64,000 nucleotides of DNA, from positions 77,996,001-78,060,000 of the forward strand of contig NC_087445.1 in assembly GCF_036321535.1 (NCBI RefSeq), in the 5' to 3' direction. Of the stretch, positions 5,031 through 49,440 are shown piece after piece. Origin of the DNA: Camelus dromedarius (taxonomy: Eukaryota). Position numbers and translations under genes: made by a program. The notes beneath the pieces are model-generated. The model saw only the letters and a program-made list of their open reading frames with translations. It was not told where the DNA came from and made no database searches. How positions within the stretch are numbered: position 1 is the first letter of the stretch; each line of letters starts with the position of its first letter.

Positions 5031-5949
5031 TCTAGACAGGAAACGAAACCCCAGTTCACCCTCCTATATATCTGGGTCAAGGAGGCCAGTAGGGATGGAC
5101 AGACAGACTGTATTTGTGTCTTGCTTTCAGTCTGCCCACACACACACTGGTCTGGCTCAGTCCCCACCGGCCCTGGGCCCCTGAGCAGCACCGGGATACT
5201 ACAAGCCCTGGGCGAAGATTTCGGCACTGTTTGAAAAACAAAAAGAACTGGAAGGACCTTCAAGGCCACACAGTCGGTGAAGAGACCAGAAATAGAATGC
5301 GGCTAATAGTCCCTGGTGGGTTCCTGGAAGACAGCGCTCTCTCTCCCCTTCCCAAACTGGCCAGATGTCCAGCAGAGATGTGTCTTTAACATCTACTTCC
5401 TCCTGCGGGCACCAGGCTGCAGGTGCACATGGGGAGCTGGCCCCAGGTTGCCCCAGCCTCAGAGAGCCTGGAGGCCAGGCCTGGGGCCTGCACACACTCA
5501 GGGCCCCTGCTGCTCTGAAGTCCCCCAAGGCTTATATTTCACCCTACTTCCCGCTTCCCTGCCGCGGGCTCCTGCCCCCGGCTGTTCATCCCGTCTCAGC
5601 CTCGGGGTCCTTATCCCTAAGTCTAGGCTGAAGCAGGGGGCACAGACACATAGAAGCATCCGGCAAAGACAGCTGCAGGCCTGGGCAGCTTTCTTGGAGA
5701 GAAGGCTGGCCCTGCAGCCCGGAGCTCAGAGTACTTGAGGGCGGTGGGGGGGTGTCAGCAGGAAGAACTCCTGCTTCCAGGGAGCCTGGCTTAGCCTTGA
5801 GCTTCGCGCAGCCTTAAGGCAAGGAACCACTCCGCCAGCCGGGAGGGGGAGGAAGGGGGGGAGGGTACGGTGCCGGGCACACAGCGGACACTGGACAGGT
5901 GGGAGCTTCCAGTAACGGCGCAGCTGAAGATCAGAGTAGCAGGATCAAC

Positions 5950-18797: not shown

Positions 18798-19206
18798 AAT
18801 TTCTTTTAATTAAAAACGAAAAACAAAAAAATGGCTCTCAAATAAAGACACAGGGAGGGCTATCTGGGCATTCCCAGCATTCAGGCCGAGACTGGGGTCC
18901 CAGGACACCCACCGCCCTGTTCCTTGACTACAGATGACTCGGGAATTCAGGGCAAACATGGCAAGGCCTTTAATGGGAAGGCAAGCTCTGATCCATCTTA
19001 GATGTAAAACGGGGGGGCGGGGGCACCACAGCCCTGGTGGCATGTTTTTCTAACCTAGAGAGGAAAAATACTATATTTGCAGGGGAAGAGTAAAGCGTGT
19101 CCCTTTACAATTGGGCAGATTATCAAAGACTAGGGCTGGCGACTGTCCAGACCGTCACCGCCGGCGCCGGGAGGGCCCTGGACGGAGGGTCTCCCACCGC
19201 TGCCCC

Positions 19207-22200
19207 TCAGTCGCAGATGGACGGCTTGTTGGCCCGGTAGCTGGGGTGGAAGTTGAACCGGTCGAAGGAGGTGATGTAGTTGTCGGGACCTGTCACGATG
19301 CTCTTCTCCATGTACACGTTGAAAGTATTGTTCTGGAACATTCCACCAGCTGCAAGTTGTTTAGAAAATCTATGCGAATTTGGATAAAATACCTTCTGGA
19401 AGTGAAAAGGGAACACTTGGATTAGTGATGCATGGTAGCGCTCTGGAGCAGTCAGTCACGAGGCATTTTTGGAAGAAGAATAAGAATTTGTAAGAAAAGG
19501 TCTCTATCCCTAAGGAGCAGAGAAGCCAGGGTGGGCAGGCTGGCCCGGGTTGCCCCTGACCTTCCCACTTCACGCCTCATGTCAGGCAGTAAGTATTACC
19601 AGTACCTCCTTCCACTAGGACGTGGACAGGAGGGTCCACTACGGCCCCCCGGACGAGGCGCTGCCACACCTGGGCCCGGCACCCGGGTCAGGCCCAAGCG
19701 GCACCCAGGTCTGCGCCTGCCGGCTCTGCTGCTGGGGCCAGTCACCGGGCCGCTCTGCGCTGGAGCTTCCCTTCTGTGGAAAAGAGCCAACGTCAGTGGG
19801 CTTCAGCCTTGCCTGTGTGTTGGAATCCCTTGCGGAACTTTGAAAGGACCCTGATGCCCACACCCCACCAGCCGAGGGGGCCGGGGACGGGCTGCCCTAG
19901 CGAGGCGAGGCCGCCGGCATGTGCGGCCCCCGAGGGTAGGAATCGTTCCGGCAGCACAGCATCCTTAGGTGACCTTGAGGTTTCTGACGCCAGTGGCCTG
20001 GACCACTGCCAGGTAGTACGCCCGGGACAGGCGACCTGTTCTCGGCCATCCTTGTGTCAAGGGGTCACTTGGCGTTTTATCTCTTCGGCAGGAAGCAAGT
20101 GCAAAGAGAAAGGGCTTCAGTGCGTCGTTTAATAGGGTTTGTTTTTCAGGGCAGTTCTGGGTCCACAGAGAACCTGAGCAGGGCGCACAGACTTCCCACA
20201 CCACCTCCTCTCCAGGACACACGGGGAAGCCTCGCATCAGCCTGGTGCCCCCACGACAGCTGAGCCAGTCCCGACAGGTCATTGCTAACTGAAGCCCAGA
20301 GCCTACGTCTGGGTCCGCCTTCTGTGCTGTGCGTTCTGGGCTTTGGCAAGCGGATGGTGAATGACGTGTGCCCGCCATCACGGCGTCACAAAGAATAGCT
20401 TCCTTGGCTGTATTTTCTAAAATGCAAAGAAAGCATTTTTGTTTTCTGTTCCCACATGGGAAGTCCACACTGAGGGCGGCTCAGTGAGTCCAGAGGCCAC
20501 GTCCAGGTCAGGAAACTGCACACCAGGCTCCAGGCAAAGCAGGCTGATAAGGAGCAGGAGCAACTCCTCCCATGCTCGCCTCCTGAGAACCTGGTGCTGC
20601 GCCTCACAGAGCCCCGCGAGCCAGCCAGTGCCTCTTTTATGAAAAGCAAAACATTCGGGCCTACGTTGGTGAGTCCTCTGTCATTTTCATGGAAACAGCT
20701 GATCTCTGGGGAAACTTGGAGCCGCCTGATTCCAGAGAGGGGTCCTGAAGCACTCTAGAAAGCTTCTAGGTAAGTAACCTTCTCGTCAGAGCCCTACCTC
20801 CCATGCACATCAATTAAATAAGCTAATATCCAGATCTTCTAAATGAGGAATAGTCTAAGAGGAAAAACACGGCCACCCCACAATGGGTGGCCCTGCTGTC
20901 TTGAGTACCTAGGGGATGCTTACGCTGGTCCCTCTGCCCTTCTCCTGGACCCAGCGGGGGCATCAGGGGGTTCCAGGACGCCCTCTGCAGTGAGAGGTCG
21001 ATCTCAAAAAGGGGTCGGGTTCCCCCAAAGGCACACAGATCCCTGCGTCCTTCTGTAACCAGTGCTTTCGTCAGCCAGTGCTACCTCTTAAGGCGGCAAG
21101 TTAATAGCTAATAAAACAAGGTATTATTCCAAAAAGAAAGCAGTTCTTCGTTTACTTGCCTCAAAACTTACTGCTTTCGGTTGCAGGAGTTGGTTGGTTG
21201 TATGAGTGAATGGGGCCAGGTCTTTGGGATGTCGTAAGCAAGTCTACATGCAATTTTTTCTTTCTCTCTTTTTTTTCAATCTAGGTAGTTTATTTTGGAG
21301 ACAAAGCAGTACATGCCCTTTTTTCACCCTTTAAATGCTTCATTGCTAAATTCATTCACTCATTTATTTCTACCCTCCCCTGTCGCAAAAGGATTTGCGG
21401 GATCCTTTCCACTTTGTGACGTTGGAACTCTGAGCCCCTCCGCTCCTCCTCCCTCCACGCTGTGCTGCCCTTTTGAGACTTTCAGGGTTTCAGCCTCCTG
21501 CTAGAGACGCCCCACCCACACACACGAGCACGCGCACCGTTCTTTGCTTCCTGCTTACCGGCATCTCATGCACCGTGGGGGCTCTGCTCCCGTAAGCTTG
21601 GTTACTGGTCCTGTACACTGAGGGGGGCTCCTTGGCCCTGGCAGATGAGAAACATACTTTATTTTCCACTCACTTACTCTAAATTCTGCTCAAGCCACAG
21701 CTTTCACATATTGGGTCCATGGAGCCTTGTTGGAAATGCCCCAGGTTGGTGATGCCGCGGTGAACCTGGGCTCCTGCGGAGCGCGAAGCTGGCCTTCCTG
21801 GCAGGCTCAGCCTCCCGGGCCCCGCCCCTGCTGAGCTCTGCCAAAGCCCCGCGGACATCCCAGGTGGCAAGTGCTGGCCCTCAGCCCTGGCGGGGCCTGG
21901 GCCCAGGCCGTCATTTCCCGGGTGGGTGGGCGGGCTGGGAGCGGAGGGGCCGCCCCCAAGGGGAGGGTCCCTCCTACTTCTGAGCCTCCAGGAGAAAGTT
22001 TCACAGAGCGGCGGGGGATTCAGACACCCCAGCTCCGTCGCGTACTAACTGCGGGCTCTCGGGCAAGGCACTATCTTTCTGCATCCCAGCTGTCTCTCCT
22101 GGGAAATGGGGATGATAACAGAGCCAAGTGTACAGGCCGGTGGAGGCACCAAGCGAGGGGCAGGGAAGGCGCCGCCGGCGGGGTCTCAGAGGCTGCGGCG

Positions 22201-22751
22201 CAGGAAAGCTCGCAGGCCACGCCCCTCAGCAGCCTGGTGATGGACGCGTCGCCGGAGCCCCCGCCCCACCTCCGGCAGACGCGTCTTCTCAGCCTAGGGA
22301 GGAGAGGGGACGCCACCCGCCCCGGGGTGCGGCTGGGCTCAGCCTGGGCTGTGGGATTTCCCCTGGGGCACGCCCTGCCCCGTGTCACCCCACCGAGGGG
22401 TGGGAAGCTTCAGGTAGCACTTCTGCGCCCCTCTGATGGTTGACGGGGACCCCGCTTTGACTTGGGGCCAGGCTGGGGCCCGGGGTCTCTTGCACACAGA
22501 GCTATCTAGCAGCGCGCAGGGCCAGCTGGGCATCGGTCGGCTGGACCGGCGGCCTTTCTTTCCTCTTTGCATGCCGGGTGGACCCTGACCAGACTCCCTC
22601 GCCCTCACCTGTAGCCCCGAAACCACGCCGGGTTGTTGAACCTGGCCGGCAGGTCCTCGCTCACGCGGTAGTAGTCACTGGTTTTCTCCGGGGGGCCCTT
22701 GGCCTTGGGCTCCTCCGGCTCCGCGCACACCTGGGGGTTCTCCTCGGACAT
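19207..22751 (-). CDS. PIERCE1: PIERCE1 (C9orf116), ciliary microtubule inner protein; complement(join(19207..19395,21559..21637,22609..22751)), 136 aa
   Basis: Exon 1 MSEENPQVCAEPEEPKAKGPPEKTSDYYRVSEDLPARFNNPAWFRGY; exon 2 RAKEPPSVYRTSNQAYGSRAPTVHEMP; exon 3 KVFYPNSHRFSKQLAAGGMFQNNTFNVYMEKSIVTGPDNYITSFDRFNFHPSYRANKPSICD*. All introns are GT-AG. Lengths 143+79+189=411 nt. Candidate ATTAAA on the minus strand at 18969-18974. Confidence 0.95.
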
Positions 22752-22759
22752 CTCGCCTC

Positions 22760-23773
22760 CGTCCACCCGAGCTTCGGGGACAAGAAAGAGCAGACAGGAA
22801 ACAGCCTCTCAGCCCGCGGGACCACGAGGGTCCGCGCGGCGTCCTGTTGCCAAGCGACGGGCTGGTCCCCTGCGTGGGTGGGCGGGGCCCTTAAAGGCGC
22901 CGCGCCGCGGGGCCCGGGCCCCACGGCTGGCAGGTGGGGCAGAAGTCCGAGGTCTAGAACCTTCTGTGGCGAGCAGCCCAGGCCCTGTGCTGGCCGTGAG
23001 GGTGAGGAATTGCTTCCCGGGGTTGCAGTGCCGAATGCCTTATGGTCAGTAGCCATCGGCCCAGACACTTGCCAACGTTTTCTCAAACGCAGTGGGAGGC
23101 GGATTTCGGGACGGAGGAACCTCGGGCCCTGGTTCAGGTTCCCCAAGGCCGCTCCGCAGGCAGTGAGCTCACGCTCGCCGTGTGGGCTTCTTGACCCCCC
23201 AGCCCTCCGACTTAAGGCCCCCCCCAGAATTAGACTCCAGATTTGCCTAACTATGGAATTCTTCTAAGACAAATGTTGTTCAAAAATTAAAACGCTTTTG
23301 GACAAGCGTGAGGTGGTGCTGTACTGGTCGGAGGTGAGGGCGGTCCCCATCGCTCGGCGGGTTCCCAAGGGGACGACTGGGGGCCTCCTCCGCCTCCGGG
23401 CACCGTGCAGGGAGCGGGCGAGGACCCCGGGAAGGGGGACGGGGCGGGGGGACCCGCCCCCCAGGCCCAGCGCTTGCCCGGACCCCGATCCCGACCCCGC
23501 CTCATGCGCGTCCGCGGTGCCGGGCAGATGTGGGGCTCAGGGCCTCGTGCGTCCGGAGGACGGCGCGCTCCGACCCGAGGCGGGGGCCAAGGGGCGGGGA
23601 CGCGTCGCGAGCGGGGCTCCCGGAGCGAAGCCGCGGGCGCGCAGTGGCACCTCCGGGCCTGCAGGCGGCGCTGCGACAGAGGCGCGGCCCGCGGCGGAAG
23701 GAGGAGCCGCTCGTGGAGCCGCCGCGTCCGTCCGCCCGCCTCCCGCGTCCGCCCGCCTCCCCGTGTCCGCGCC
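22760..23773. promoter_or_regulatory. Bidirectional CpG-island promoter shared by PIERCE1 and MRPS2
   Basis: The start codons at 22751 (-) and 23774 (+) diverge across about 1 kb of CpG-rich DNA. X-box-like GTTGCCAAGCGAC at 22846-22858. Confidence 0.8.
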
Positions 23774-26672
23774 ATGGCGTCCGGCCCGGCGCTACCCCGG
23801 CTGCTCGGCGCGGGTGAGCGCGCCGGGGCCCTGGGGCCGGGGGCGCGGCGCGGGGCGCGGGCCCCCTTCCCGGGCCGGGGGCGGGCGGAGGGAGGCGGGG
23901 GGGGCGCGCCCCACGAGCCCGCTGTCCCCGCAGGTGTCCGGCGCAGGCCGCTCCGGCTGCACGTCGTCCCGACGGCGACCCCGGGCCCGGCCGGGCCGAG
24001 CAGCAGGACGCTGGGGAGCGCCGCGGCCCCCGCCGCCCGCGAGCCCGGGAGCAGCAGCGGTAACGCCGGCTCCTCGGCGCCGGGGGAGGGGGGTGAAACC
24101 GTCCCGCCGGGGGGCCCAGGCGCCCTGGGTTTAGACGTGGGCCCTGGAGGGACGCGGGCCCCCGGAGCCCCCGGCCCCCAGCAGCCCCACCTGCTGGGCC
24201 GCACGCGCTTCCAGGGGCCTCGGCGCGGGGGGCGGGGGGCCGCCGACCCTTCCCGGAATCCTGGCCGTGTTTCCGCGGGCGGCTGGACGGCACCGCCGGG
24301 ACTTCAGGCATCAGCCAGGCCCCTACTTTCCCAGTGAGGGTTTGACCAGGTTTACCCGGGGCGACGCCACCGTCAGACTTGGCCTCTACCTCGAGTCTCC
24401 AAAGAGGCCCCTGTGGCCCTGGGCCCCCTCAGCGTCTGGGCTTCCCGCCCTCCCCGCCCGCGGCCCCCTGGACTGGGAGCAGGGGCCCAGACCCTGCATC
24501 CTCCCTGCCTCCCCGCCCTAGATCTCAGCGAGAGGATCCTCAGCGAGCCCCTCAAGCACTCTGACTTCTTCAACGTCAAGGAGTTGTTTTCGGTGAGAAG
24601 TCTCTTCGATGCGCGAGTGCACCTGGGACACAAAGCGGGCTGTCGGCACAGGTGGGTGACGTCCCTGGTGAGTGTGGTGATTCCTCCAGGGGTTTGGGAC
24701 CCTGCCTTGGGGTCCAGGGCCACTCCAGTTTTTGCGAGAGAACAGCCCCCTCTGCCTCCAGATGGGATCAGTGACCCCAAAAACGGGCAGGTGTTTATGC
24801 TCAGATGCGGTTTGTTCCCCGCTCCCATGCGTCTAACTGGGTACCTTGGAGTGGGGCCCATGGTCCTGGGTGGGGACAGGCCAGCAGCCGGTCTTGTGAA
24901 CCGGTGATGGATGAGGGGGCTGCCATGGCCACCCACATCTGGAGGGGAGGTCTGGAAGATTATGCAGACAAGTAGAAACTGGCTCAGTTTCTTCACAAAG
25001 TTGTAAGATGGCTGAGTTGGAAATGGATTGAAGGGGCAGGTGGGAGGCCACTGGGGGAGGTGATTGTGGAAGTTCAGGGGGAGGTGACGGGCCCAGTTCC
25101 TGGGGGCAGAGTCCGGGTTGGGGTTGGTGTGGGGGGACAGAGCAGGTGTTGGTGTCCTTCCCTGAGATGGTCAAAGCCACATCAAGGCCTGGGGGACATC
25201 AGAAACTTGGTCCTGTGCCAGGTGACCTTTCGGCCACCCCAGTATTGATGTCACACAGGCCCTAGGAGGGAGTAGCCTGGGCCTGGGGGGCACCATGTCA
25301 GGACCTCTTGAGAACATCTGGAGAGGAGAGGAGGTCCCAGGCAGGACCTCTGGGCTGCCAGCATCTTAGGTTCCAGGAAGAAGGGAAGTGGCCAAGAAGA
25401 GGGAGGGAGGGCATCCACTGTGGGCAGCTACCCAGAAGTCACCTGAGGTGAGGGCAGGTGGAGGTCGTGGGGCCTCGAGCAGTCTGTTGAGAAGAAGGGA
25501 CTGAATCCAGATGCGAGTGAGCAGGGGATGAGGACCAAGGGACGGTCTCCTGCCCCCATCTCTCTGTCCTAGTCAGCCAGTCTGTGCCCTTGGGGCTCTC
25601 CTCCCGGGCCTGGCTGGCTTCTGTTCTGTCCCCTCACACTCGCAGCCCAGGGCACCCCCTGCTCTGCTGGTCCCCCAGGCGGGGTGGGGGAGGGGGAGGC
25701 AGCCTTGGTTGTAAAGCCTCAGAGACGGAACTGCAGCCGGCCCAGCAGTACCAGCAGAATGGTCTGCGCATCGCGTGGGCGTGTCCAGACAGCCGTGTGG
25801 CATGAGCTGTTAGAACCCCCATGCAGCAAGGTGGAGGTTCCGAGGCCGAAGCCGCTTGCCTGAGACGCGGAAGTGGCCTGTGGCCCAGCCTGCCCTGCCC
25901 CCGCCCCCACCCCTGGCTGCCTCTGGCCGTCACTCCTGGGACGAGGCGCTTGCCGTTCTCGTCGCACTGAGGGGCTGCGGGCTGCACCAGCCCCGTATGG
26001 TGTGTCCCCCGTGGAGGGGCCGAGGGGGCCCGTTCACGCTGGCCTTGGTGCGTGTCTGGCAGGTTCATGGAGCCGTTCATCTTCGGGAGCCGCTTGGACC
26101 AGGACATCATCGACCTGGACCAGACGGCCGCACACCTGCAGCTGGCCTTGAATTTCACGGCCCACGTGGCCTATCGCAAGGGCATCATCCTGTTTGTGAG
26201 CCGCAGCCGGCAGTTCTCACACCTGATCGAGAGCACGGCCCGGGACTGCGGCGAGTACGCGCACACCCGCTACTTCAAGGGCGGCCTGCTGACCAACGCG
26301 CCCATCCTCCTGGGCCCCATGGTGCGCCTGCCCGACCTCATCATCTTCTTGCACACGCTCAACAACGTCTTCGAGCCCCACGTGGCCGTGAGGGACGCGG
26401 CCAAGATGAACATCCCCACCGTGGGCATCGTGGACACCAACTGCAACCCGACCCTCATCACCTACCCCGTCCCTGGCAATGACGACTCGGCCCCCGCCGT
26501 CCACCTCTTCTGCAGGCTCTTCCAGACCACCATCAACCGGGCCAAGGAGAAGAGGAGGCAGGTCGAGGCCCTGTACAGACTGCAGAGCCCAGAGGGGGCC
26601 GCGGGCCGGGCTCCAGCCGACCCTGCTCCCCCAGGAGCGCAGGCCGGGCTGGACTTGGGTCATTCCCCTTGA
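23774..26672 (+). CDS. MRPS2: Mitochondrial ribosomal protein S2 (uS2m); join(23774..23813,23934..24059,24522..24651,26063..26672), 301 aa
   Basis: Exons of 40+126+130+610=906 nt joined by GT-AG introns. Contains the uS2 signatures [36 protein letters not shown] and [36 protein letters not shown] at 27137-27142. Confidence 0.97.
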
Positions 26673-28654
26673 TGGGCCACCCTCCTCCTGGGTGAAGCAG
26701 CAGCCAAGCCCGTTCCTAAGCTGGGAACAGCCCCCCATGCCAGTCCCCTCCCTCCCCCTCCTCCCTCCCCCGTCGTCCCAGGCACTGGGTCCCTGCTACT
26801 AGGAACTTCTCAGCAGCTGCCCGCCCAGGGCTCCACGTCAGACCCACGACCCCAGCAGGCTCCCAGGGCAAGCGGCCTGTCCACAAAGGACCCATTGGGA
26901 GCCACCTTGCCCCTGGGTCCTGCAGTCCTTGCTTCTACCTCGAGATGAGCCCCCCCATGGGTTGGCAGGGTTCTCACACCGGGTCGACTTTTACTCTCAG
27001 AACACCCCAAAGTCAGGCTGCTTCCTGCCGCCTGGTTTCAGGAGCCGTTTTGTAACATGAGGCTGCAGGGCGAGCCACTCCAAGATCCTGTCTGGGTTGG
27101 AACTGGCCGGGCAGAGCGGGCAGCACAATTCCAACAAATAAAACTGGGCTTCCAGCAGGACGGTGCCCGGACCATCAGGTCTGCAGTGTGGTCTGTGCTC
27201 TTGTCTCTGCTCGCCCCCGGGAGCGCACAAGACTCATCTGTGCCCTCTGGTGCTCGGGCTTCGGGGAGGCAGACGTGCAGACGTGTTGGGTGGGAGGGCG
27301 GAGGCCCTGGCTGTGCCTCGGCACCGTCCTCCGTGCTGGGGCTCGGAGGCCTTGGGACCTGCCCGCGTCCTGAATGGTCAGGAAGGACGTATGGACGCTC
27401 ATTCCCGGGTTTCCTGGGTGCTCCCTCGTCAGTGAGGCCTGGGGTGAGGTGCGGGCCGCTCTTTCCGGGAGCCTGCCCTGTGGCGCTCAGCACGTTCGCT
27501 CCCGGTGTGCCTGACCGCCCCCGGGAACCTGTCTGCTGGCGAGGGTCTGTGAGGGCGGGGCAGGCTGGCGCACGGGGGCAGGAAGCCGAGTCCTGGGGTC
27601 CACTCAGCGTCTCCTTTCAGGGAGGGGGTGCATGCTGGAGGTTCCTGGTGTTCTCTGGAGACACGCTGGGTTCCTGGTTCAGAAGGTGCAGGAAACCGAG
27701 CGTCTCTTTGAAAGCACCAACTGACCAGTCTTGCTTTGATTTGCAAACATGAAGTATGAAGATGCAGATCTGTAGGCAGGTAAACCGAGGGGCCCCCCCC
27801 CAGGGCTTCCCCCCACTGGAGACCCCGTGTGTGGGTGTGGGTGAGTTTCCCCGAGCAGGTGGCCTGTGGGGAGAGCCAGCAGGGCCGCCCCTCGGCATTC
27901 AGGGAGACCCCCGTGGGAGCCGAGGGCCTGGAGATGAGCACAGTGTGGAAATGCTTCCTGGCCGTCCGTGCACAGGAGTTCCCGGAGCACAAACTGGGCC
28001 TCCCCAAGGCTGCAGGGGGTCCACACCACCCCTCAGAAGCGGGCATTTAGGGCACCACAGGCAGCCTGGGGGCGGTGAGTGACACGCAGGGAGACATGAG
28101 TACACAGGAGCCATGGGACTGGCTGGAGGGGAGCAGCCCGGGGGGACAGACTCCCTGGAGCACCCCTGCCTCACCCCATTCCCTAGGGGACCCTAGGATA
28201 CTTGCAACCCGCTCTGGATCCAGGCAGTGAAGACCAGCAGGGGCGACAGCAGTGTCTGAGTCACTGGCTGTGCTTCCAGCCCAGGTGCTGGGGGCAGGGT
28301 GGGCAGGAGCGGCGCACCCAGTGGGTGTCCCAGTGGACAAGCAGAAGCAAATGAGCCCGATGGGTCCAGCTGCACGAGGACCAGAGCCAGGGTCGGGGCC
28401 TCTCTGGGAAGAGCAGCGAGGGGACCAGAGGGGCTCAGGTTGACGGAGCGGGCGTGGCCTCAGCCCTGCGGGAGGGCACCTCCAAGTTTGCCTCCCTGGC
28501 GGTGAACCCCAAGAGATGCCAGAAGCTCTGAAGGGGGTGAATGCGCCTAGCCTTGGGGGCACGAGAGGAAGGGCCGCCCCCGAGCCCTCGACTTGCCCTT
28601 TATGCCTGAGCTCTGGGCCCTGGCAGGGCTGGGCCCTGCCCGCTGGCCCCGCAG

Positions 28655-31370
28655 GCGCCTGGAAGAGCCGGGCTCCGGACTGGGCAGGTGCACCACGCCC
28701 CCAGCCTGGGCCAGGACAAGCCTAGGGCGACCGTGGGCACAGAGGGTCTCCAGAACCAGGCCTCGGGATGGCTGTGACCAGACGCCACCCAGACACCTCC
28801 CCAGGGCCCCGCCCAGGGCTTCGCCTCTTGAGTGCCCAGTCCCCCGCCAAGAAGCTGGGCCCCTCCCTTCACCCACCAGTGCCGTCCACCCCGGGCCTAG
28901 GCCGGGTGCGAAGGCAGTTTGCATGTATTTGTAAGGCTGGCCGAGACAAGTCTTTGTGTGCTGTTGCGTTTCAGGATGTGAACATGGATATTTGGGGATT
29001 GTTTTTGAACTGCCTCTCCTTTGAAAATTGGCCCCCGTGTGAGAATGAGTCAGCCCTGAACCCGTGAGAGACCTGGGGTGGGGGGGTGGGGTCACAGCAG
29101 ACCCCGGGGGGGAGCTGGCGGGGCGCCTGGTGCCTGCCTTCCAGGGCAGCGACCTCTCCTATGTCACCATCTTCCTGTGCACCTACCGAGCCTTCACCAC
29201 CACGCAACAGGTCCTGGACCTGCTCTTCAAAAGGTGAGCCCCCGCGCCCCTCCTGGCCGTGTGACTTGGGAGCGCCACTTCACCTCGCCGAGGCTCCGTT
29301 TGCGCCTGTGAAGGCCGGGCTGCCCAGAGGCCCGGCCGCACGGGGCTGGCAGGACATCGGGTGAGCGTGCACGGCGCGACCCTGTGCCCGGCCCTGCGGG
29401 AAGGGCTGCCGGGGCACCTGCGGTTCTTCCTGAGGGTTTCCTCTCCCCCGCAAAGAAGCCCCCGCCCTTGGGCAGGGCTGTCTTCCCGTTTGTGAAGGAG
29501 GTTCCGGGTTCCGTCGCGGGGCGGGGGCCCTCCCAGAGCAGGGGTCACTGGGCTCTGGCTGAGCCCACTCAGATAGCTGTAAGGGGCCGACTCGGGGCTA
29601 CACACGGGGCCCCCACTGTGCGCAGGCGCTGTTTCAGGCCTTTGGCGTAAGTCAGTGACTGGGGCAGATGGAAACCCCTGCCCTCCCGGGGTTCCACCCT
29701 GGTCGGGGGGTCAGCCAGTAACACCGGACGTCACAGCAGGTACGGTAGATGTGACGCCCTCACGGCCTCCTCTAGATACGGATGCATCCTCCCGTACTCC
29801 GACCAGGACGGCGGGCCCCAGGACCAGCTGAGAAAGTGAGTAGGCTTTGGGTCTGATGGGGGGGCCTCCTGTCTCCAAGATGGGGACTTTGTGGGGCTGA
29901 GGCTGGGGAGGGGCTGGGCAGGGCTGAGGTCTGGAGGCCTCTCCTGCAGGAGGAAAGGAGTCAGGGAGCCGTGGCTGGGGTCCTGAGTCCCCAGGGAGCA
30001 GAGGGGAGACTGGGGGCTCAGAGCCGCCCCTGAGAACATCCATCCCCTCCCAGATCTGGGGCCCAGGACAGGAGATGTGAGGGGCAAGCTGCTCACACGT
30101 CGGCCTCGTGCCCCAGTGTGAGTGCTCGGCTGGGGCTCACGAGAGCTCAGTCGGGGCTCGGGGGCCGGCCGTGTTCCCAATCCCGAGAAAAGTGTCACTG
30201 GGGTAATGAGGCTGACACGCGATGCGGAGACAAAGGCAGCCCTTCGGGGCTGAGCTGCAGGCTCAGGTGCGCGAGGCCCAGGAAAGCCAGGCAGGGGCCA
30301 CGCTCTGCTCATCCCCTCCTCCCTCACACACTCATGCAGCACCTGCCGTGTGCCGGCCAGGCCAGTGTGATGGAGTAGACGTGACCCTCCCTGCCCTCCT
30401 GCAGTTTCCACTCCAGTGAGGAGGGCCTGGGGTCGGACAGGAGTGAGTCAGGTTCCCTGAGAAAGGGAGAGGTGGTCACCACGGATGGAAGGCTCCCTCC
30501 CACGGAGACTGCCCGCCCCACCTGCTGACCAGGCTGCCCCTGTCTGGGTGGGCTGGGGCGGGGCTGGCCTCTGGATGGGCAGGGATGGGCCCCAACACCC
30601 AGCCGCCTTGGAGGTGCCATGGGAGGGCAGTGCAGAAGGAAAGCCCAGGCCTCTGACTCTGTCGTGCCCCGTCCCCCACCACTGCCTACCCCCAGTGCCA
30701 TCTCCTCCATCCTGGGTACCTGGCTGGACCAGCACTCAGAGGCCTTCTGTCAGCCACCGGACTTCCCCTGCCTCAAGCAGCCGGTGGCCTACATGCAGCT
30801 CAACATGCCTGGCTCTGACCTGGAGCGCCGCGCCCAGCTTCTCCTGGCCCAGCTGGAGCATGCTGACCTCACCGAGACAGAGCCAGAGGGTGAGGAGCTC
30901 TGGGGGGTGGGGGGGCGATATGAGCACGTGGGGAGGGGCCCCAGAGGCCGCTGCTGGGCCAGGAGCAGAGGTGGGCCTCAGACCACCGGCGTGCTGGACC
31001 GCAGGCGGGGAAGTCGCCCTGTGCCGGATTCTCGTGCCAGAGCTCCTGTAAAAGGCGGCAGGACGTTTTCTGTCTTTGGAAAGGCACCATTTGGAAGGCG
31101 GGCATGTCCATCTCCTCTGTGGCTTCACCGCTGTCTCAGCGTCTCATGATGGCTCCAGCACCAGCTCCGGGACCATCTGAAGATCTGGACCAGCCGCAGA
31201 AGCACCAGCAGAACTGAAGCCAGAACCAGAGCCAGAGGCATCTCCATCAACAGGTGCGCCAGGGTGGGAGCCAACAGCACCGTCAGTCCCATCAGCACCT
31301 CTGCGGCTGGAGCCCGGCGCGGCGGGGACAAGGCCCCGCGGGAGGCCACCCTCAACTCGCTGCCCCAGGA
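28655..31370 (+). pseudogene. Unprocessed, 3'-truncated RALGDS-like pseudogene (REM-domain exons only)
   Basis: Exon ~29038-29233 reads ENESALN(P)*ET..[frameshift]..LVPAFQGSDLSYVTIFLCTYRAFTTTQQVLDLLFKR. Exon 29740-29835 reads YGRCDALTASSRYGCILPYSDQDGGPQDQLR. Exon 30696-30889 reads AISSILGTWLDQHSEAFCQPPDFPCLKQPVAYMQLNMPGSDLERRAQLLLAQLEH. A degenerate upstream exon at 28655-28726 (EE..G..QVHH....GQ) and a frameshifted Pro/Glu-rich exon from 31140 flank these. Lesions: in-frame TGA at 29065-29067, frame change before 29127, no CDC25 domain found. Confidence 0.9.
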
Positions 31371-31379
31371 CGTCCCTTC

Positions 31380-31860
31380 CCTCTCTTGTTTCTGTTTTTG
31401 TTTTTAATTTTACTTTCCCCTTTCATGTTATTTGTGATGCTTTTTATCTTATGTCTTAATACAATCAAGCTTAACTTTTTAACTTTATATTGAGCACTTG
31501 AGGAGCGCGTAGTCCACTCACGTGACCTTCAGGCCTGTCTCAGAGCCGACCGCCTCACTCCCCAGAAGGAAGCCCTGGACGGAAAGCCGTCGCCCCCCGG
31601 CCCTCCCTCCCCCGCCCCCCACACCCCCTAACCTTTCTGTCTCTGTGTCTTTCCCTGTTCTGGATGTTTCCATAAACGGAATCGTGCAACACGCAGCTTT
31701 TTGTGTGTCTATTTTGAGAGAATAGTTCATTTTTGTTTTCTTTTTCTACCTGAAATAGCACTTCTGTTACATGAAGGGGAAATCCCGATGGAGTAAAGGT
31801 GGAATGCACAGAGTGAAGCCCTTTCGGCAAACACGTGCACAGTCTCAGGGCAGAGACCCC
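31380..31860 (-). mobile_element. Old L1M 3' fragment abutting the end of the RALGDS-like relic
   Basis: T-rich start, then ttccctgttctggatgtttccataaacggaatcgtgcaacacgcagctttttgtgt, which resembles the reverse complement of an L1M 3' UTR. Confidence 0.65.
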
Positions 31861-32779
31861 GTTCTAAGTGTGACAGCAGCTCCCTAGGACAGAAGGGACA
31901 CGCCCGGCTCCTCCCGGGCCGAACAAAACCGCGAGAAACGCGGAGAGAGCGGGTGAGGCCGCACCCAGACCTGAGCTGCGCTCCTCACGCCCAGGAGCAG
32001 AGAGAGGGCGGACCCCCCTGCGGGCCCCGAACTCTCCAAAGTCAGTGCTTTTAAAAGGGCCCAAGAACAAACATGCAGTTCCAACGAGAGGCCGCACACA
32101 TGGTCAGTACGTGTCAGAGACGCTTGACCTCACTGATGGGGACACGCAGACGTAACCACTGTGGAGACAGCACCGGCCACCGTCACACTGGCAGGTTCCT
32201 CGTCTGGAGGTGACCAGCCCTGGGGACGACGTGAGGGGCAGAGGCCCCCCGGGCCCCCCAGAGGGAGGTGTGGAGGACACGCCTCTCTGGGAGAACCGTG
32301 TGCATGCTGTACCCAGGGCGCTAAGCCTAGGCTCACCCACAGGAGTTCTTGCACAGGGTTTTGAGATGTATTTTCAAGTGACCCATCACAGCGTTGGCCG
32401 AAATGGCAGGGACCTGGAAACAACTCTAGTGTCCATGGAGGGGGACGGGGTCCATCAGTCCTGGTCCACGCGGACGGGCGGTGCTATGCAGCTGCCCCAG
32501 TGGGTGTGCGGGTCTCCGTGCTGACAGGGGAGATCCAAGGGGTCCTTTTTCATGAGAGACGTGTGGACAACCATCTGCATCCAGGAGCTCGTCTGTAAGA
32601 CTACATGTATCTCATGTCAACATGCAGACACGTGTATATGTAAACGAATCTGCGTCTCAGACAGACAGACAGAGACAGAATGAAACCAACAGAGCCCGAG
32701 GGAAACACACCGAGCCGCTCACGACGGTTGTCCTGGGGTGGGACTCGGATCTCTCCTCCTTTAGGTGATGTGAGATTTT

Positions 32780-32955
32780 TTGTACGTGTGTTTGTGTGCA
32801 TGTGTGTGTGCATGTGTTTCTGTGTGACACGTGTGTGCATGTGTGCCTTCCCGTGTGTATGCAGGAGCGTACACGCGTCTTGTGCAGATGTGTGCGACAT
32901 GCATGTCTGTGTAACATGCCTGAATGTGCATGTGCACATGTGTGTGTGTCTGTGC
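32780..32955. repeat. Degenerate (TG)n/(CATGTG) low-complexity tract
   Basis: Alternating purine-pyrimidine run gtgtgcatgtgtgtg... Confidence 0.85.
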
Positions 32956-33809
32956 ATGGTCGGGGGAGATTCCAGAACATTCCCCCGGCTACACAGTTCT
33001 TACTCCAGTGGTGGGTGGCCCCATCCCCACCAGACCCAGAACCTTCTCTGAGCCCTCCAGCCTGAACTTGCAGCCCCTCTGCTGGGGATGCATCACCGTG
33101 TGGTCACGACAAAGCTCGGGCCCCCTTCTCGGGGGTCTTCCCGCTGCTCCTGAGGGGTCAGCCACGCTGTTTGTCCCCTTTAATGGCTCCTCACACACCA
33201 GTGACACTCGTGTGGCAGGAGGGAACATCTGCTCCATGGAATTAGCCTGGCATGTGCCCCGCCCACCGAGAGGCCCTCGGAGTCACCGTCTCGCTGGTCC
33301 CTGGCAGCGCTGCGCGCGGTGCCCTTCGCGGCCGGTCCAGGCCAGACCCGTCGGTGTGTTAGACTCACGGCAGGGAGCCCTGCAGGTGCAGATGGGCTGA
33401 GGGGCGGGTCAGCTCCCCTTGAGGTGGGAGACCATCCCGGATCACCCAGGCGGCCCAGAGCTGTCTCACCTGTTGGGAGGGGCAGGGTCAGAGAGGGAGG
33501 ACGGGAGGATGGGACAGGGTCAGAGTGACGCCCATGGGGTGACTGCGCTGGACGCTGCTGGCCCTGACGGTGGACAAAGGGGCCGCCAGCCCCAGGAAGG
33601 CGGTGGCCTCTAGAGGCTCAAGGTGAGAAAACGGATCCTTCCCAGGGGCTCTGGAAGGGAACCAGCACGAACTAGAAAAACAACCCTGGTGTGTGAAATG
33701 GACGGTTTGCTGGGGAGGCCGCCCTGCCGTCCGGCAGACGAGGAGGCGGGGCTGGTCCGCTCGGGAGAGGCAGGAGGTGGCTCTGCACGGAGGGCCTGGT
33801 CCAGGCCCG

Positions 33810-33880: not shown

Positions 33881-34008
33881 NNNNNNNNNNNNNNNNNNNN
33901 NNNNNNNNNNNNNNNNNNNNNNNNNNNNNNNNNNNNNNNNNNNNNNNNNNNNNNNNNNNNNNNNNNNNNNNNNNNNNNNNNNNNNNNNNNNNNNNNNNNN
34001 NNNNNNNN
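33881..34008. other. Assembly gap (128 N)
   Basis: Run of N after a TG tract. Confidence 1.
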
Positions 34009-35115: not shown

Positions 35116-36554
35116 CTGCAGTACAGCCCCCAAGGTGAGCAGAGGACACGACAGGCGGGCTGTGGCATCCATGGGGGCATCCATCCATCCATCCTCAGAG
35201 CCCCTTCAGGAGAGACCCCACCGCTGAGCAGTGAGGAGGTCAGCAGGCCGACACCCCAGGGACAGCACCCCATGGGGGTGGGGGGGCCGGTCCCACCTCT
35301 GCCCCTGCAGGCCCACCGCGGACACCCTGGCTCCCACCTCCCCACTGGACCAGAGGCTCTTGTGAGGGTCTCCGTGCTGTTCAGCCTCCTCCCCCCACCC
35401 CATCCTTCTCAGGCTTCACCCCCGCACGCCCTCCCTCTCCCACCTGTCTCAGCAGCCGCTTCCCGGGGGACCCAACTGAGCAAGAGTTGGAGGAAACGCA
35501 CCAGGAGCAGAAAGGGAGAAGCAGAAGTGCCACGTTTGCAGGGAAGTTAGCTCTGTGTGGTCAGACCCGCGGGCTCCACTTCCCACCCCTCCACCCCCCC
35601 AACCCCCGTGCCCACGGCAGCCGCCGCCGGGACCTCTGACCTGGGCCTGCGGGGCTGCTCTTGCTTCGGGGCCACTCCTCGGCCTCTGCCCCAGAACCAG
35701 GTCCGGGTGGGGACAAAGCACAGTGGTCCGATGGCAGGACGTGAGCCCCCACGACGCCAGCTGCCTCTGAGAGGCTGAGGTCCTCCGGGGCCTCCGGGGT
35801 CCATCCCCTGGGAAGTGCGGGCTGTAGGATTCTGTTCAGATCGCTCTGCTTCCGCGCTCATCTCAGCCCTGACCGTCCTCCCCGGACACGAGGGCCCTGC
35901 AGGGTCCGGGCCTCCCTGCAGCTCACGGCCCAGCCCGGAGCCCACCCTTCCACCCCGCGTCCACACCCCCTCCCGGTCCCAGCCCACCTGAGGGACCCCA
36001 CAGACAAGCAGAGCCACCGAGGATGCGGAAGCTCTTTATGTGAAGCCAGGAGAGGGGTAGGGGGCTGGGGGAGGAAGTGGGGGGGCCAGGGGGGCGGAGC
36101 AGCCCAGGCCCCCGGGACAGGGCCCCTTCCCTGTCCTACACGACAGAGGGTCCCGGTGGGGCGGCCCCAGGGCTGCTGTGGAGACTTGGCGCCCCTGCCG
36201 TGGAAAGGGGGAGCGGTCAGTGAGGCCAGGAGGGGAAGGGGGAGGGCAGATGCAGGCCACTAGGGGGCAGAATCCAGCTCCCGGTGCACGGGTGGGTGGG
36301 GGCAGACCCCGTGTTCCCGAGCGCACAGCAGTGAACCCAGCAGACACTGGGGGAACAGAGAGGGGGCCTAAATGTCTGGCAATGAAGCTCAGGAACAGGC
36401 ATCGAAGGGAGGGTCCCGTCCCAGAGGGGCTCTCGGAGCAGAGAAGTCCCTCCTGGCTCAGGCCGGGCCCCGCCTGCCTGCGGCTTGGGGAGCCCCGGTG
36501 GCCCCTGACGTCCCACTGGACCCAGGACTCTGGTTTGCTTCAGGGCCACTCACC

Positions 36555-38796
36555 CTAATCACTTTCAGGATCGCAGCTTTCTGTAGAGACCAAGACAGAG
36601 CCAGGGGTGGGGAGACGCCGGGACAAGGGCCGAGGCCCCTCCCCACCCGCAGCGCAGACGCGGGTCACGAGACCCAGCGCGGGGCCCTGGCGGCCCTGTG
36701 ACCCGTCACAGCACAGGTGTCTCCCCACGCAGGCGCCGGGGAAGGGGCAGGAGGGTCATGGGCTGCGTGGAGAAAGAGGAGAGGACACAGGGAGGGACAC
36801 GGGGACACAGCAGGGCCGCCCCCTTACCCATCAGTGCAGGAATGAAGATGTCCTCCTGGGGTAATCCCTCGCGCTGCGTGAACTTCTTAAAAGCATCCAG
36901 GGCTTCCTGGTTCACGTCGGGATTCCTACCTGCAGGCCAGGCACCCGGTGAGCCCCGGACTTGGGGAGCAGATCCAGGGAGCAGGGGCCCCTCCCTGCAC
37001 CAGGGTTCACCCTGGAGTGGCCGAGGGCAGGAGGGGCGCTCAGCCGGGGAGTGGACACAGAGCAGGTCAAGAGGAGACAGGCCCCCACCCAGCTGACACA
37101 TCCCCGGGAAGGGGGGTAGCAGTGGGGACACCCTGAGTCCGTGAGTGCTCTGGGGGGCCCCGGGCTGGCTTCCGAGGCTGACCTGTAGGGTCACGTCCCT
37201 GACCCAGAGGAACGTGCTGCCCTCTGACCAGAGAATTCTTGGACTTGACTCCCAGCCCGGAGAAGGCCTCCAGGAGCAACACCGCCCTCCCCAACGCTGA
37301 CCAGCCCCGCGTCCGAGACCCCGGGAAGCGGCTCTTTGCAGCAGCAGTGGCTGGAATCCACTCCGTGAGTGGTCTGTTGGGCCCAAGAGGGTGATGTCTG
37401 TCCCTAGCCTGTGGGGGCCCCTGAACCCACCCTTCCCAGGGCAGCACCCAGCCCAGCACAGTGGGTGGGCCCTGTGCAGAGATGCGGGCGTGTGGGGGCG
37501 GAGACTTACCCACAAGCTCGGCTCCTCTGAACTTTCCCCCGTGTACTCTCCTTCGCTATAGAACACAAGATGCCCCTTCCCGGGCGTCCCATCCACGTGC
37601 AGGTGGCTCTTGCCCCAGCTGCGGGAGGTCGGGGGCAGGGTGCGTTAGCATCTAACCCCAGGACCCCGACCGCCATGCCCCCGGGTCCGGTCACCTGTCC
37701 CCCGGTGTCCCCGCCTGGCCTCAGCCCCAGGAGTGGGGTCCCTAAAACCAGGGCCCCCCTCCCTGTGACTGCCCCCTCCTGGCCACAGGACAGAACAGTG
37801 GGGGCAGGAGGCTGCCTGGGGGAACGCTCCCCCTCTGGGTGCCCCCAGCCGTCCAGGACTCACAGGCACTGTATTCACTGGGCACACTGGTCTTTTCTAG
37901 GACAAGCTCCACTTCAGAGCACCAGCCATCGATCCTGGAGAACAGAGCCCAGGGGGCAGGGCCTCGATGTCCCCTTCTGCTTGGAGGGAGGCACCAGGCC
38001 CCCCACCCCAATCTCGGAGCAGCACGGCTGACCCCAAATCCCAGCGGGTCCCTCCCACCTCCACTGCCTCATCCCAGCTAAGCCACCCCTGGGCCCCTTC
38101 CCCCGCCGAGTTCAGGGTTATTCAGCATCTCCCCATGCCTGCAAGGTGGCAGGAGAACCCTGAGTGGGGCTGGCTCTGTGGCCACGGTCCCGACGGGCCT
38201 GGCCAGGGGTCTGGGGCCATGGGAAAGGGGCCAGCGTGAGGGGACAGGGCCCCAGACACTCACATGTGCCTCAGGGAGACCTGCACGTGGCCACTGCCCA
38301 GCTTGGAGAACGTGACGGGGGCACTGTCCTCGGGGAGATGACCTTGTCCCCTGGGACAGCCTTCATGAGCCACGCCCCTGCCATCTGAAAGACGGAGCTG
38401 CTGGCTGTCTGCTGGTCTTCCTTGTCACCAGCTACCGCTGCCTGTGGCCAGCTCGCCTGCCCCCAAGCCCGCAGGTGCACCCACAGCCCCCTGCCGGCTG
38501 CCCCCTGAGCACACCCGAGGTCCTCCCACTAGCGCGCTCCTGGGGCACCGGCTGGGGCCGAGGACACAGGTCGGAGGCCCCTGTGGCTCCCAGTCCTCCT
38601 GCTCTCTCTGCCACAGCCTGTGCGGAGGGCCGAGCCTCCTGACCCCAGGGTCCTGGTCTCCGTGAGCAGGGAGGGTTCGGCCTCTGGCCCGTCGCCTCCA
38701 CTCCACCCCAAGGGAGCCTCCCATCCGGCTCCTGGAGGGACTGGCCTGCAGGGCCACAGTCAGGCTGAGGCTGACGGTCAGGAGCAGGGTCCTCAT
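36555..38796 (-). pseudogene. OBP2A/OBP2B-type odorant-binding lipocalin, apparently pseudogenised
   Basis: Exons are ~38723-38796, 38264-38384, 37864-37934, 37510-37618, 36828-36929 (GRNPDVNQEALDAFKKFTQREGLPQEDIFIPALM) and 36555-36580 (ESCDPESD*), with a non-coding exon from 36135. Lesions: exon 1 donor reads GGGAGG instead of GTGAGG, exon 1 is 74 nt, exon 2 is 121 nt (needs 3n+2), exon 4 is 109 nt (vs 111). Confidence 0.85.
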
Positions 38797-38877
38797 CTCT
38801 GGGGCTCTGCGCCCACGGCCGGCAGACTGGCTCGCTGGGGCTGGGAGAGGCCGTGCCAGCCCCTTGAACGGCCGGCC

Positions 38878-38920
38878 TTTATCCTCCCGGCTCAGGGTCC
38901 CCCGCGGAACTTGGCCCAGC
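38878..38920 (-). promoter_or_regulatory. GATAAA (TATA-position) box plus upstream GCCAAGTTCCGC element of the OBP2-type gene
   Basis: Minus-strand GGATAAAGGCCGGCC lies about 85 nt upstream of the ATG. The same motifs occur upstream of the LCN1-type gene. Confidence 0.55.
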
Positions 38921-39364
38921 CCAGCCACGGCCCCGGCCAGCTGGCGAGGCAATGTCCTCATTTCCAACAACGGCCCATTCGGCCCTCGGGCTGCCTCGCG
39001 CCCTCCCTACATGGTCGGGGGGGAAGCGGGAGCCCCCCTGCCCTTGGAGCCCCAGATGAGGGTACAGCCTCGCTCCTTACCCGCCCTCCTCCCCTCGCCC
39101 ACCTTTGCCCGCTCTCCCACCGGTCTGCCCCATGGGCTGATGGAGGACAGTCCCCGGAGCAGAGAGAGGCAGCTGTTCAAGCAGCTCAGGCCCCATCCGT
39201 GGCCCTGCTGCTCCCGGGCCTGCAACCTTCCACTCTGCATCGTCCCGTAAGGGGCCCTGTTGGGGATTCAGAGCTTAGTTCAGTCCTGCCTCCTCCAGGG
39301 AGGATAGATAGATAGATACCCCTGTAGCACGTTCTCTGTTCAATTTTCTGTAGAGAACCTTTCT

Positions 39365-42259: not shown

Positions 42260-43730
42260 GCAGAAAGACAGCCGAACCAGAGAACCCGGCTGTGTCAGGA
42301 GAAATAATACAATCCTGCGAATAGGGAGAAAAAGTACCGAAGATAAAAAGCAGCTCCGGGAGCTGTGGGACGAGATCAGACAGCCCACCACGTGTGTGAC
42401 TGAGTCCCAGGAGGAGGCAAGAGACTCGAGGGCGGAGGAACCCTCTGAGGAGATACGGACGGAAGTTGTCCAAATTTTACGAAAAACCTTAAATTACAGA
42501 TCCGAAAGCTCAGAAAACCCCAAGTAACATAAATCAAGAGAAATCAATGCCTCAACATCAAAGTCCCAAAAACCAAACTTAAAGAGAAAATTTGAAAACA
42601 ACCAAAGGGAAAAACTATGTCGCACACAGGAGAGCATTAAGCTGAGCAAGGACCGTCATTTCATCAGGAGCCAGAGGCCAGGACGCTGTGGGACAACACC
42701 TCTCAAGGGCTGAAGGAAGTAACTGCCAACCCAGAATTCCACCTCTGCTGAAAATATCCTTCCAGGACAAAAGCAAAATGTTAATTATCAGAGAAATGCA
42801 AGTCAGAGCCACAGTGAGGTTTCACCTCACACCAGTCAGAATGGCCATCCTTAAAAAGTGCACAGACGATAAATGCTGGAGAGGGTGTGGAGGAAAGGGA
42901 GCCCTCCTACACTGCTGGGGGGAATGCAGTTTGGTGCAGCCATTATGGAAAACAGTACAGAGATTCCTCAGAAAACTAAAAATAAATTTACAATATGATC
43001 CAGCAATCCCACTTCTGGGCACATATCCAGAGGGAACCTTAACTCAAAAAACACATGCANNNNNNNNNNNNNNNNNNNNNNNNNNNNNNNNNNNNNNNNN
43101 NNNNNNNNNNNNNNNNNNNNNNNNNNNNNNNNNNNNNNNNNNNNNNNNNNNNNNNNNNNNNNNNNNNNNNNNNNNNNNNNNNNNNNNNNNNNNNNNNNNN
43201 NNNNNNNNNNNNNNNNNNNNNNNNNNNNNNNNNNNNNNNNNAGTGAAGTAAGTCATAAAGAGAAAGAAAAATACCATATGATGTCACTCATATGTGGAAT
43301 CAAAAAAGAAAAAAGAAAAGAAGACACTAATGAACTCATCTACAAGACAGAAATAGTCACAGACATAGAGAACAAACTTACAGGTACCGGGTGGGGGGAA
43401 GGAGAATGGAGAGGGATAAATTGGGAGTTTGGGATTTGCCGATACTAACTACTGTATATAAAACAGACAAGCAGTATGTGTGTATGTATGTGCATGTGTA
43501 ACTGAATTGCTCTGCTGTACACCTGAGACTAACATTGTGAACTGACTACACTTCAATAAAAAAAAAAAGTAAAGGAGAACAACAGGTGAACAACAAGGTC
43601 CTGCCGCACAGCAGGAGGAGCCGAGCTGGACGGCTTGAGACGGCCTGTAGTGAAGAAGGACATGTGTAACTGAGTCGCTACGCTGCACGCTGGGGATTAA
43701 CGCTATACGTCAATGTTTTTATTTTTTATG
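42260..43730 (+). mobile_element. L1 cluster: old ORF1 relic (42260-42780), younger 3' fragment with N-gap (42780-43570), second degenerate tail (43570-43730)
   Basis: ORF1-like cagatccgaaagctcagaaaaccccaag. ORF2 C-terminal peptide [32 protein letters not shown]. Gap at 43060-43241. A-tail at ~43556-43568. Confidence 0.85.
43060..43241. other. Assembly gap (182 N)
   Basis: Run of N inside an L1. Confidence 1.
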
Positions 43731-48931: not shown

Positions 48932-49015
48932 CTCCAGGGCTCTGTGCTCACAGCCACCCGACAGGTCACCTGCTGGGGCTGGGAGAGGCTGTGCCGGCCC
49001 CTCACACGGCCGGCC

Positions 49016-49056
49016 TTTATCCTCCTCCGCCCAGGGACCCTGCGGAACTTGGCACA
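49016..49056 (-). promoter_or_regulatory. GATAAA (TATA-position) box plus upstream GCCAAGTTCCGC element of the LCN1-type gene
   Basis: Minus-strand GGATAAAGGCCGGCC at 49016-49021 and GCCAAGTTCCGC just upstream are conserved with the paralog at 38.9 kb. Confidence 0.6.
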
Positions 49057-49440
49057 AGCTACCGACCCGGCCCTTCCTGGCCGCGAACCGTGGTAAATTC
49101 TGCAGAGGAGCAGGTCGACGTCCGCATTGCTGACGCTTGTTCACCACCCGCGGTTGTCTCGGCACCGCCCCCCGAAGGAACCGGTCCACAGGTGTCGTCT
49201 GCGGGGGAAGTGGTGCCAGGGAGGATGTGGCTGGGTCTGAGAGCGTCCCTGGGTGGCTCCTTAGCCTCCGATTCAGCACCAAAAAAGAGACACCTGCTGT
49301 GTGAACATGGCGGTGTATTTGAAAGTCTACACCCCGACAAGACCCGCAGTAAGGAGGCACTTGGACCCCCGCTGCCCCATGCACGGAGCATGCAGATCAG
49401 ACACAGGAAGGGAGAAGCAAGATGGCAGAGCCGTGAAGAG

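Follow-up and report, generated by a model that had tools for sequence, protein, structure and literature searches.

How can three exons of RALGDS stay close to those of the working gene, with clean splice sites, amid flanks that have fallen into ruin? The question is raised by a locus of the dromedary, Camelus dromedarius, which lies between MRPS2 and a lipocalin cluster in a stretch of 64,000 nucleotides of contig NC_087445.1 (assembly GCF_036321535.1, positions 77,996,001 to 78,060,000 of the forward strand); this whole stretch is called the window, and coordinates given without another label refer to it. We consider it probable that the locus, termed here the relic, is an ancient, scrambled and unprocessed RALGDS pseudogene, whose exons for the REM domain have been kept parent-like by recurrent gene conversion. 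This is the account taken as a whole; our confidence is higher for the orthology of the relic and for the conversion tract of the gray whale, and lower for conversion in the camel and for the loss of function of the camel copy.

The REM exons and their lesions

The relic contains three exons on the forward strand, E1 to E3, whose boundaries, as well as an alternative acceptor displaced by 36 nucleotides, are those of the REM-domain exons of RALGDS. These exons, and the tract in which conversion is proposed, are the following:

29032-29120, + strand: broken 5′ half of E1, delimited by alignment with the authentic RALGDS of the gray whale and with the cat relic
29121-29233, + strand: intact 3′ part of E1, with a GTGAGC donor at 29234
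29740-29835, + strand: E2, with a CAGCAG acceptor at 29734-29739 and a GTGAGT donor at 29836
30696-30889, + strand: E3, preceded by CCCCCAG and followed by a GTGAGG donor at 30890
29112-30900, + strand: putative gene-conversion tract, from mid-E1 to just past E3 and including both introns, with approximate boundaries

The exons were searched individually, with no joined spliced model. The E1 piece at 29049-29234, which is open and has no ATG, matched the Pfam family RasGEF_N (PF00618) with an E value of 8.3e-10 and 39.3 bits, against a cut-off of 28.3, over profile positions 12-49 of 106; E2 and E3, compared singly with Pfam, gave no match. Both of the latter exons, though, aligned by tblastn with RALGDS REM exons at 82-91% (E2 at 88-91%), and the stop-free piece holding E3 recovered RALGDS-type proteins in a protein homology search, with E values down to 1e-34. 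E2 contains an internal alternative acceptor, the AG at 29774-29775, and encodes a segment of 12 residues, which is present or absent among the isoforms of authentic RALGDS. Of 132 codons compared in frame with the authentic RALGDS of the alpaca (P0226), 10 encode a different residue in the relic. An earlier note on this DNA, made from the letters alone, had described three almost unchanged REM exons with intact donors and an E2 segment behind a CAGCAG acceptor, and both descriptions are borne out by the coordinates, the GT donors, the Pfam match and the low number of differences.

The 5′ half of E1 has a different fate. Compared with the authentic RALGDS of the whale, it shows CG in place of the acceptor AG and, at 29065-29067, the stop TGA in place of a TAT codon, and a net shift of +2 nucleotides has disrupted the frame; identity to the whale is only 59% in the bin 29060-29119. 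All three lesions had already been read from the camel sequence, with the stop at 29065, and the three-way alignment agrees with that reading. No open frame carries the whole REM domain from a start codon.

Orthologous copies, flanking remnants and age

The 15 kb surrounding the relic are 98.3% identical to the Camelus ferus chromosome record CM020771, in which the order is MRPS2, the relic and a lipocalin gene on the opposite strand, tail-to-tail with the relic. Gray whale sequence L003 10-14078 is colinear with 19045-32304 of the window at 70-74%, a span that takes in both MRPS2 and the relic, and in a cat of the genus Leopardus PIERCE1, MRPS2 and the relic are found in colinear order, including the CDC25 exon scrap listed below. 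In reindeer, hyena and stoat a homologous copy is also found, though its surroundings have been rearranged; no MRPS2 is located within 10 kb of the stoat relic, and no MRPS2 gene was called within 10 kb of the relic in the reindeer (L007). As the relic lies next to MRPS2 in C. ferus as well as in the whale and the cat, with rearranged copies in the other three species, it is older than the split between Carnivora and Cetartiodactyla.

The introns are also informative, as positions 29032-31032 of the window align through both of them with the authentic RALGDS of the whale (L005 12638-14656). The relic retains the parental introns, carries disabling lesions and has orthologous copies elsewhere, as is expected of an unprocessed duplicated pseudogene. 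The proposal of an ancient duplicate formed at the DNA level is therefore sustained by the retained introns and by the presence of this relic, scrap included, just 3′ of MRPS2 in C. ferus as well as in the whale and the cat; the outcome that had been set against this proposal, i.e., a recent dispersed paralogue absent outside the camelids, does not agree with a relic that is orthologous in gray whale and Leopardus.

Besides the REM exons, the relic and its 3′ surroundings comprise these features:

28455-28590, + strand: scrap of a CDC25-domain exon (135 nucleotides, with both intron edges and a mutated acceptor AG), identified by blastn and tblastn
28685-28933, + strand: decayed end of the preceding RALGDS exon with the start of the intron, 66.5% to L005 11668-11920
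31080-31217, + strand: terminal coding piece of the C. bactrianus and C. ferus NCBI models (tblastn with P0001 and P0002, 97.6%), with a TGA at 31215-31217
about 31157-31370, + strand: truncated remnant of the proline-rich linker exon, with a broken frame, recognized from translations and located outside the conversion tract
31387-32304, no strand assigned: downstream non-RALGDS sequence, 74% to gray whale L003 13144-14078

From 5′ to 3′ the relic is thus composed of a CDC25-exon scrap, the decayed tail of an upstream exon, E1-E3 together with the introns between them, and what is left of the linker exon. The scrap, which had been overlooked in the earlier note, sits 5′ of the REM exons, against the parental order; it matches the authentic RALGDS of the gray whale (L005 18195-18327) at 77% by blastn and at 65% over 20 amino acids by tblastn, and it is found at the equivalent place in the whale relic (L003) and in the cat (L006). 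The remnant of the preceding exon likewise has a counterpart in the whale relic, where L003 10347-10486 matches L005 11668-11807, and the linker remnant resembles the linker in P0027, a model of the whale relic, more than the authentic one of the alpaca.

At the 3′ side, tblastn with two authentic RALGDS proteins (P0241 and P0078) detected E1-E3 and the upstream scrap of 20 residues, and no CDC25 (RasGEF) or RA exon 3′ of the linker remnant. The idea that an L1 element cuts the copy off before the CDC25 exons holds in part: no CDC25 sequence follows the linker remnant, whereas the L1 identity of the sequence from 31370 onwards was not confirmed, as the ten open reading frame (ORF) pieces from 31254-33400 gave no L1-related Pfam match and the stretch is single-copy within the window. 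A short motif near 31660 is tentatively L1-like. Whatever terminates the copy appears to be old, because 31387-32304 is common to the gray whale at 74%.

Additional RALGDS fragments were observed around the relics of other species. In the reindeer, L007 6580-7878 contains degenerate fragments of the RALGDS C-terminal and RA-domain exons upstream of the relic, in reversed exon order (46-69% to residues 714-892 of P0241). The gray whale has a second copy of partial intron 1 and E2 (L003 10003-10109) abutting the CDC25 scrap, which is absent in camel, cat and hyena, and a linker-exon-like fragment on the minus strand (L003 16377-16699), 4 kb downstream, which is an extra of the whale only. In the hyena a diverged first exon of the CDC25 region (L002 11197-11517, 54% to authentic RALGDS) lies about 7 kb past E3; the ancestral relic may have extended further 3′ than the camel copy.

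Proposed gene conversion and decay, and the case for selection

The authentic RALGDS of the gray whale (P0241) is located on the same record and on the same strand as the relic, 58 kb downstream of it. The relic segment L003 10671-12675 is 98.95% identical to L005 12643-14646 of the authentic gene over 2005 bp, both introns included, and an older, independent gray whale assembly gives 99.5% for the same tract; the relic pieces that flank it are only about 70-81% identical to the parent. The whale tract is a recent gene conversion that covers exactly E1-E3. A contig of the older assembly (L004) was considered as a further locus and discarded as a chimera, most likely produced by the assembly, and its protein model P0081 is an artefact: positions 1-2621 are authentic CDC25 exons (99.76% to L005 15820-18266), positions 2559-9886 are the relic (99.78% to L003 10107-17435), and the join falls inside the exon scrap of 63 nucleotides shared by the two, which has an exact match of 30 nucleotides.

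In the camel the exons are 90-95% identical to the whale (92-95% for the intact part of E1), against a background of about 72%, while the introns of the tract reach approximately 0.76-0.77, compared with 0.69-0.73 in the orthologous flanks; this intron identity is weakly consistent with a copying of introns together with exons. Two peaks of conserved intron sequence, 83-92% to whale, are located in intron 2 of the relic (29960-30139 and 30380-30499). It was also observed that these peaks may copy a conserved element of RALGDS intron 2, and that the gene models of rat (P0033), reindeer (P0119) and stoat (P0040) begin translation within intron 2, just before E3.

Conversion in the camel lineage is suggested by residues. 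Three of them, at positions 22 and 31 of E2 and at position 47 of E3, are common to the camel relic and the authentic RALGDS of the alpaca (P0226) and occur in none of the 11 other authentic orthologues; a rough estimate of the probability of this sharing by chance is at most about 6e-5. The same pattern is seen in other lineages, as odontocete (delphinid) relic models match the authentic residues of odontocetes, mysticete relics match mysticete RALGDS, and the reindeer relic has ruminant states in common with the authentic RALGDS of Bos. Substitutions specific to a lineage are accordingly shared between the copy and its local parent in camelids, in odontocetes as opposed to mysticetes, and in ruminants. 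In the 5′ half of E1, on the other hand, the camel and cat relics have common derived bases missing from authentic RALGDS. E1 would join an old, unconverted half to a parent-like one, and the 5′ edge of the camel tract is placed approximately at 29112-29120, because the broken half carries the derived bases of the cat relic and the rest is parent-like. Gene conversion from the parent gene best accounts for the puzzle left by the first reading of the sequence, namely intact middle exons amid ruined flanks.

On these grounds, the following course of events is proposed. A rearrangement at the DNA level beside MRPS2 would have created a partial copy of RALGDS before the Carnivora/Cetartiodactyla split, and the copy would since have remained attached to the rearrangement-prone MRPS2 boundary. 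Within it, some 1.8-2 kb that begin in the middle of E1 and end shortly after E3 would have been overwritten repeatedly through interlocus conversion with authentic RALGDS, independently in camelids, whales and ruminants, with neutral decay of the tract between conversion events.

Textbook examples of unprocessed pseudogenes that are homogenized with a neighbouring parent through interlocus gene conversion are CYP21A1P, paired with CYP21A2, and GBAP1, paired with GBA1. The relic resembles them in its introns and lesions, in the bounded and nearly identical tract found in the whale, and in the lineage states held in common with the parent. It departs from them in that only a core of three exons is exchanged, in its scrambled structure, with the CDC25-exon scrap 5′ of the REM exons, and in a pairing that seems to have persisted since before the split of the two orders. 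With respect to RALGDS itself, E1-E3 share the REM exon boundaries, but the relic is devoid of downstream CDC25 and RA regions, the region of its first REM helix is broken and there is no in-frame start. Searches of the literature yielded no paper that deals with the relic or reports RALGDS exchanging sequence with a pseudogene by conversion.

Several observations weigh against this account. Conversion in the camel stands on three shared residues and on an intron identity just slightly above that of the flanks, and transfer between relic and RALGDS may have run in either direction. The pairwise ratio of nonsynonymous to synonymous substitution rates (dN/dS) is 0.26 against the authentic RALGDS of the whale, summed exon by exon over in-frame blocks, a value that fits also purifying selection. 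The region may be transcribed, and NCBI annotates protein-coding LOC genes at the relic in several species. Finally, Yamamoto et al. 2017 (PMC5571153) report that non-cetacean cetartiodactyls have a different arrangement of this chromosomal region.

The first of the alternatives extends the same process: relic and RALGDS would be long-lived conversion partners that exchange sequence in both ways, and the relic may also mark the original MRPS2/RALGDS junction of a breakpoint to which mammalian genomes have returned repeatedly. We regard this extension as rather unlikely.

The second alternative, which we judge unlikely, is that purifying selection keeps the three exons, for a short REM-type protein or for a functional spliced RNA, e.g., in reproductive tissue. 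The high exon identity between camel and whale against the lower background, the dN/dS value, the intact donors and acceptors of E2 and E3, the gene models in camels, whales, cats and stoat, and the existence of REM-only derivatives of RALGDS elsewhere in the camel genome are all in line with it. So are the transcript data, obtained from RNA-seq runs X15-X20, with samples labelled reproductive system metagenome, as the share of sampled 31-mers present in contigs: runs of studies P10 and P11 contain 55-59% of the sampled 31-mers of 28600-31400, and two runs of another study 36-40%. The exons, however, are only about 22% of 28600-31400, and the contigs include intron or flank because the share of words exceeds this fraction; they could derive from unspliced RNA, read-through transcripts or DNA carry-over.

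Selection, moreover, would not yield lineage-specific residues in common with the local parent in camelids, whales and ruminants, and it leaves unexplained a whale identity of 99% that includes the introns. Nor is there a reading frame common across species: the reindeer is without E2, in the cat E3 is truncated, the stoat retains only E3, and in the camel the E1 half is broken and there is no in-frame ATG. LOC105068620 of C. bactrianus and LOC116663377 of C. ferus, both NCBI models, match at 98%, but with E1 out of frame. Changes in the relics point in the same direction. Twelve authentic orthologues agree at five sites where the camel relic has a replacement of its own; four of these changes are in E3, and one is a proline where all 12 have leucine. 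In a comparison of the orthologous relics of two felids, changes affect 5 of 53 residues of the REM frame and 12 of 136 elsewhere, i.e., the rate is the same, as expected for neutral change. Between the window and C. ferus, with positions 29126-29179 masked, 3 of 349 exon sites are mismatched (0.86%) against a background of 1.33%, a difference that is not significant and has low power.

The dN/dS value had been called for as a check of residual function, with a value near 1 expected for a dead copy. The observed 0.26 is not near 1, and we do not take it as a sign of function, because it mostly measures the constraint on the parent gene before copying. Under the conversion account, the camel copy probably makes no REM protein, since E1 is ruined in its first half, and the frame of the intact half lacks a start codon.

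The MRPS2 boundary and the meaning of the relic

According to Yamamoto et al. 2017 (PMC5571153), inversions or moves of the fragment from ABO to MRPS2 have occurred several times among mammals, and LCN1/3/4 genes fill the boundaries at which MRPS2 and GBGT1 lie, among them a GBGT1/MRPS2 boundary; further background on synteny is available in PMC5377540. The passages of PMC5571153 that were searched do not describe a RALGDS fragment at the ABO-MRPS2 boundary. The relic is at the MRPS2 end of this fragment, and its other neighbour varies by species: lipocalins in the camel, a gene with a PIP49 domain in the hyena, a GT6 glycosyltransferase gene in the reindeer, and RALGDS, at 58 kb, in the gray whale. 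A relic that keeps MRPS2 beside it and varies in what lies on its other side fits repeated rearrangement of ABO-MRPS2. The premise that the parent gene lies megabases away fails in the gray whale, given the short distance and the same strand, and is weakened by the repeated movements of the block described in PMC5571153.

The boundary has another landmark. In other species an element corresponding to 58093-58758 of the window lies next to the relic, but its side and its orientation vary: the cat (L006 20291-20995) and the hyena (L002 9660-9829) have it downstream, and in the reindeer (L007 9301-9656) and the stoat (L008 8936-9014) it comes just before the relic. These shifts are a sign that the boundary has been rearranged repeatedly.

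These surroundings bear on a third explanation, already put forward in the earlier note, by which the relic is a fossil of the duplication that made the two lipocalin clusters of human 9q34 (GBGT1-OBP2B-LCN1P-ABO and MRPS2-LCN1-OBP2A), carried along with a lipocalin cassette. The relic is indeed ancient and located at an MRPS2/lipocalin boundary, and LCN1/3/4 genes are reported, in PMC5571153, at the boundaries of the ABO-MRPS2 fragment, the GBGT1/MRPS2 one included. Nevertheless, the relic is not tied to a lipocalin cassette, since no lipocalin gene was called beside it in the 10-kb flanks of cat, hyena, stoat, reindeer and gray whale; the camel lipocalin is tail-to-tail with the relic, and, with the whale parent so near and on the same strand, a partial duplication of local origin, or a remnant left at a breakpoint, suffices. 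We hold this explanation to be quite improbable.

The weakest explanation, a recent member of the amplified laurasiatherian and camelid RALGDS-like family, is practically untenable: such a family does exist in the camel genome and in many mammals, but its camel proteins P0052, P0054 and P0056 have about 66% identity to the relic in E3 (56-62% across the three exons for P0056), compared with 82-89% in E3, and 82-98% over the relic exons, for authentic RALGDS and the relics of other species, and the flanks of the relic are orthologous across two orders, so that the membership suggested in the earlier note is not supported. The REM-only genes of this family are similar to the relic in being RALGDS-derived with the REM part alone left; they are intact and diverged, whereas the relic is broken, sits in another location and is close to authentic RALGDS. 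P0097, tried as a camelid authentic RALGDS, proved to be a diverged member of the family.

Two other features of the window were noted. Compared with C. ferus (L001), the segment 35941-45660, which has runs of N alongside (33881-34008 and 43060-43241), represents about 9.7 kb of extra sequence with a second lipocalin paralogue; C. ferus L001 18718-22445 matches 45661-49391 at 98.5% and 35941-38938 only patchily, at 81-83%, and the extra sequence represents either a true duplication or a stretch that has collapsed in the assembly of C. ferus. A GC-rich ORF of 344 codons, starting with ATG (54383-55417, + strand), is probably a chance ORF; neither it nor the other long ORFs at 54-64 kb of the window have a Pfam match.

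The relic gives no hint of a new biological mechanism, being a known kind of pseudogene with a conversion history. Its case illustrates that concerted evolution can mimic function, as clean splice sites, a dN/dS of 0.26 and exon conservation across orders prove none here. It is also a warning for annotation, since the locus is labelled 'uncharacterized protein' or 'RALGDS-like', with models that misread the exon frame or enter introns. Because it can be dated and sits where the ABO-MRPS2 block ends at MRPS2, the relic could help to order the ABO/GBGT1 inversions. If, as in the rather unlikely extension above, the relic marks the original MRPS2/RALGDS junction, its scrambled arrangement, with CDC25 before REM, would preserve the event by which RALGDS was first split or duplicated at the boundary of the ABO-MRPS2 fragment; and, if conversion has run in both directions, the Q, R and Q states of camelids in the REM domain of the working RALGDS could stem from the pseudogene.

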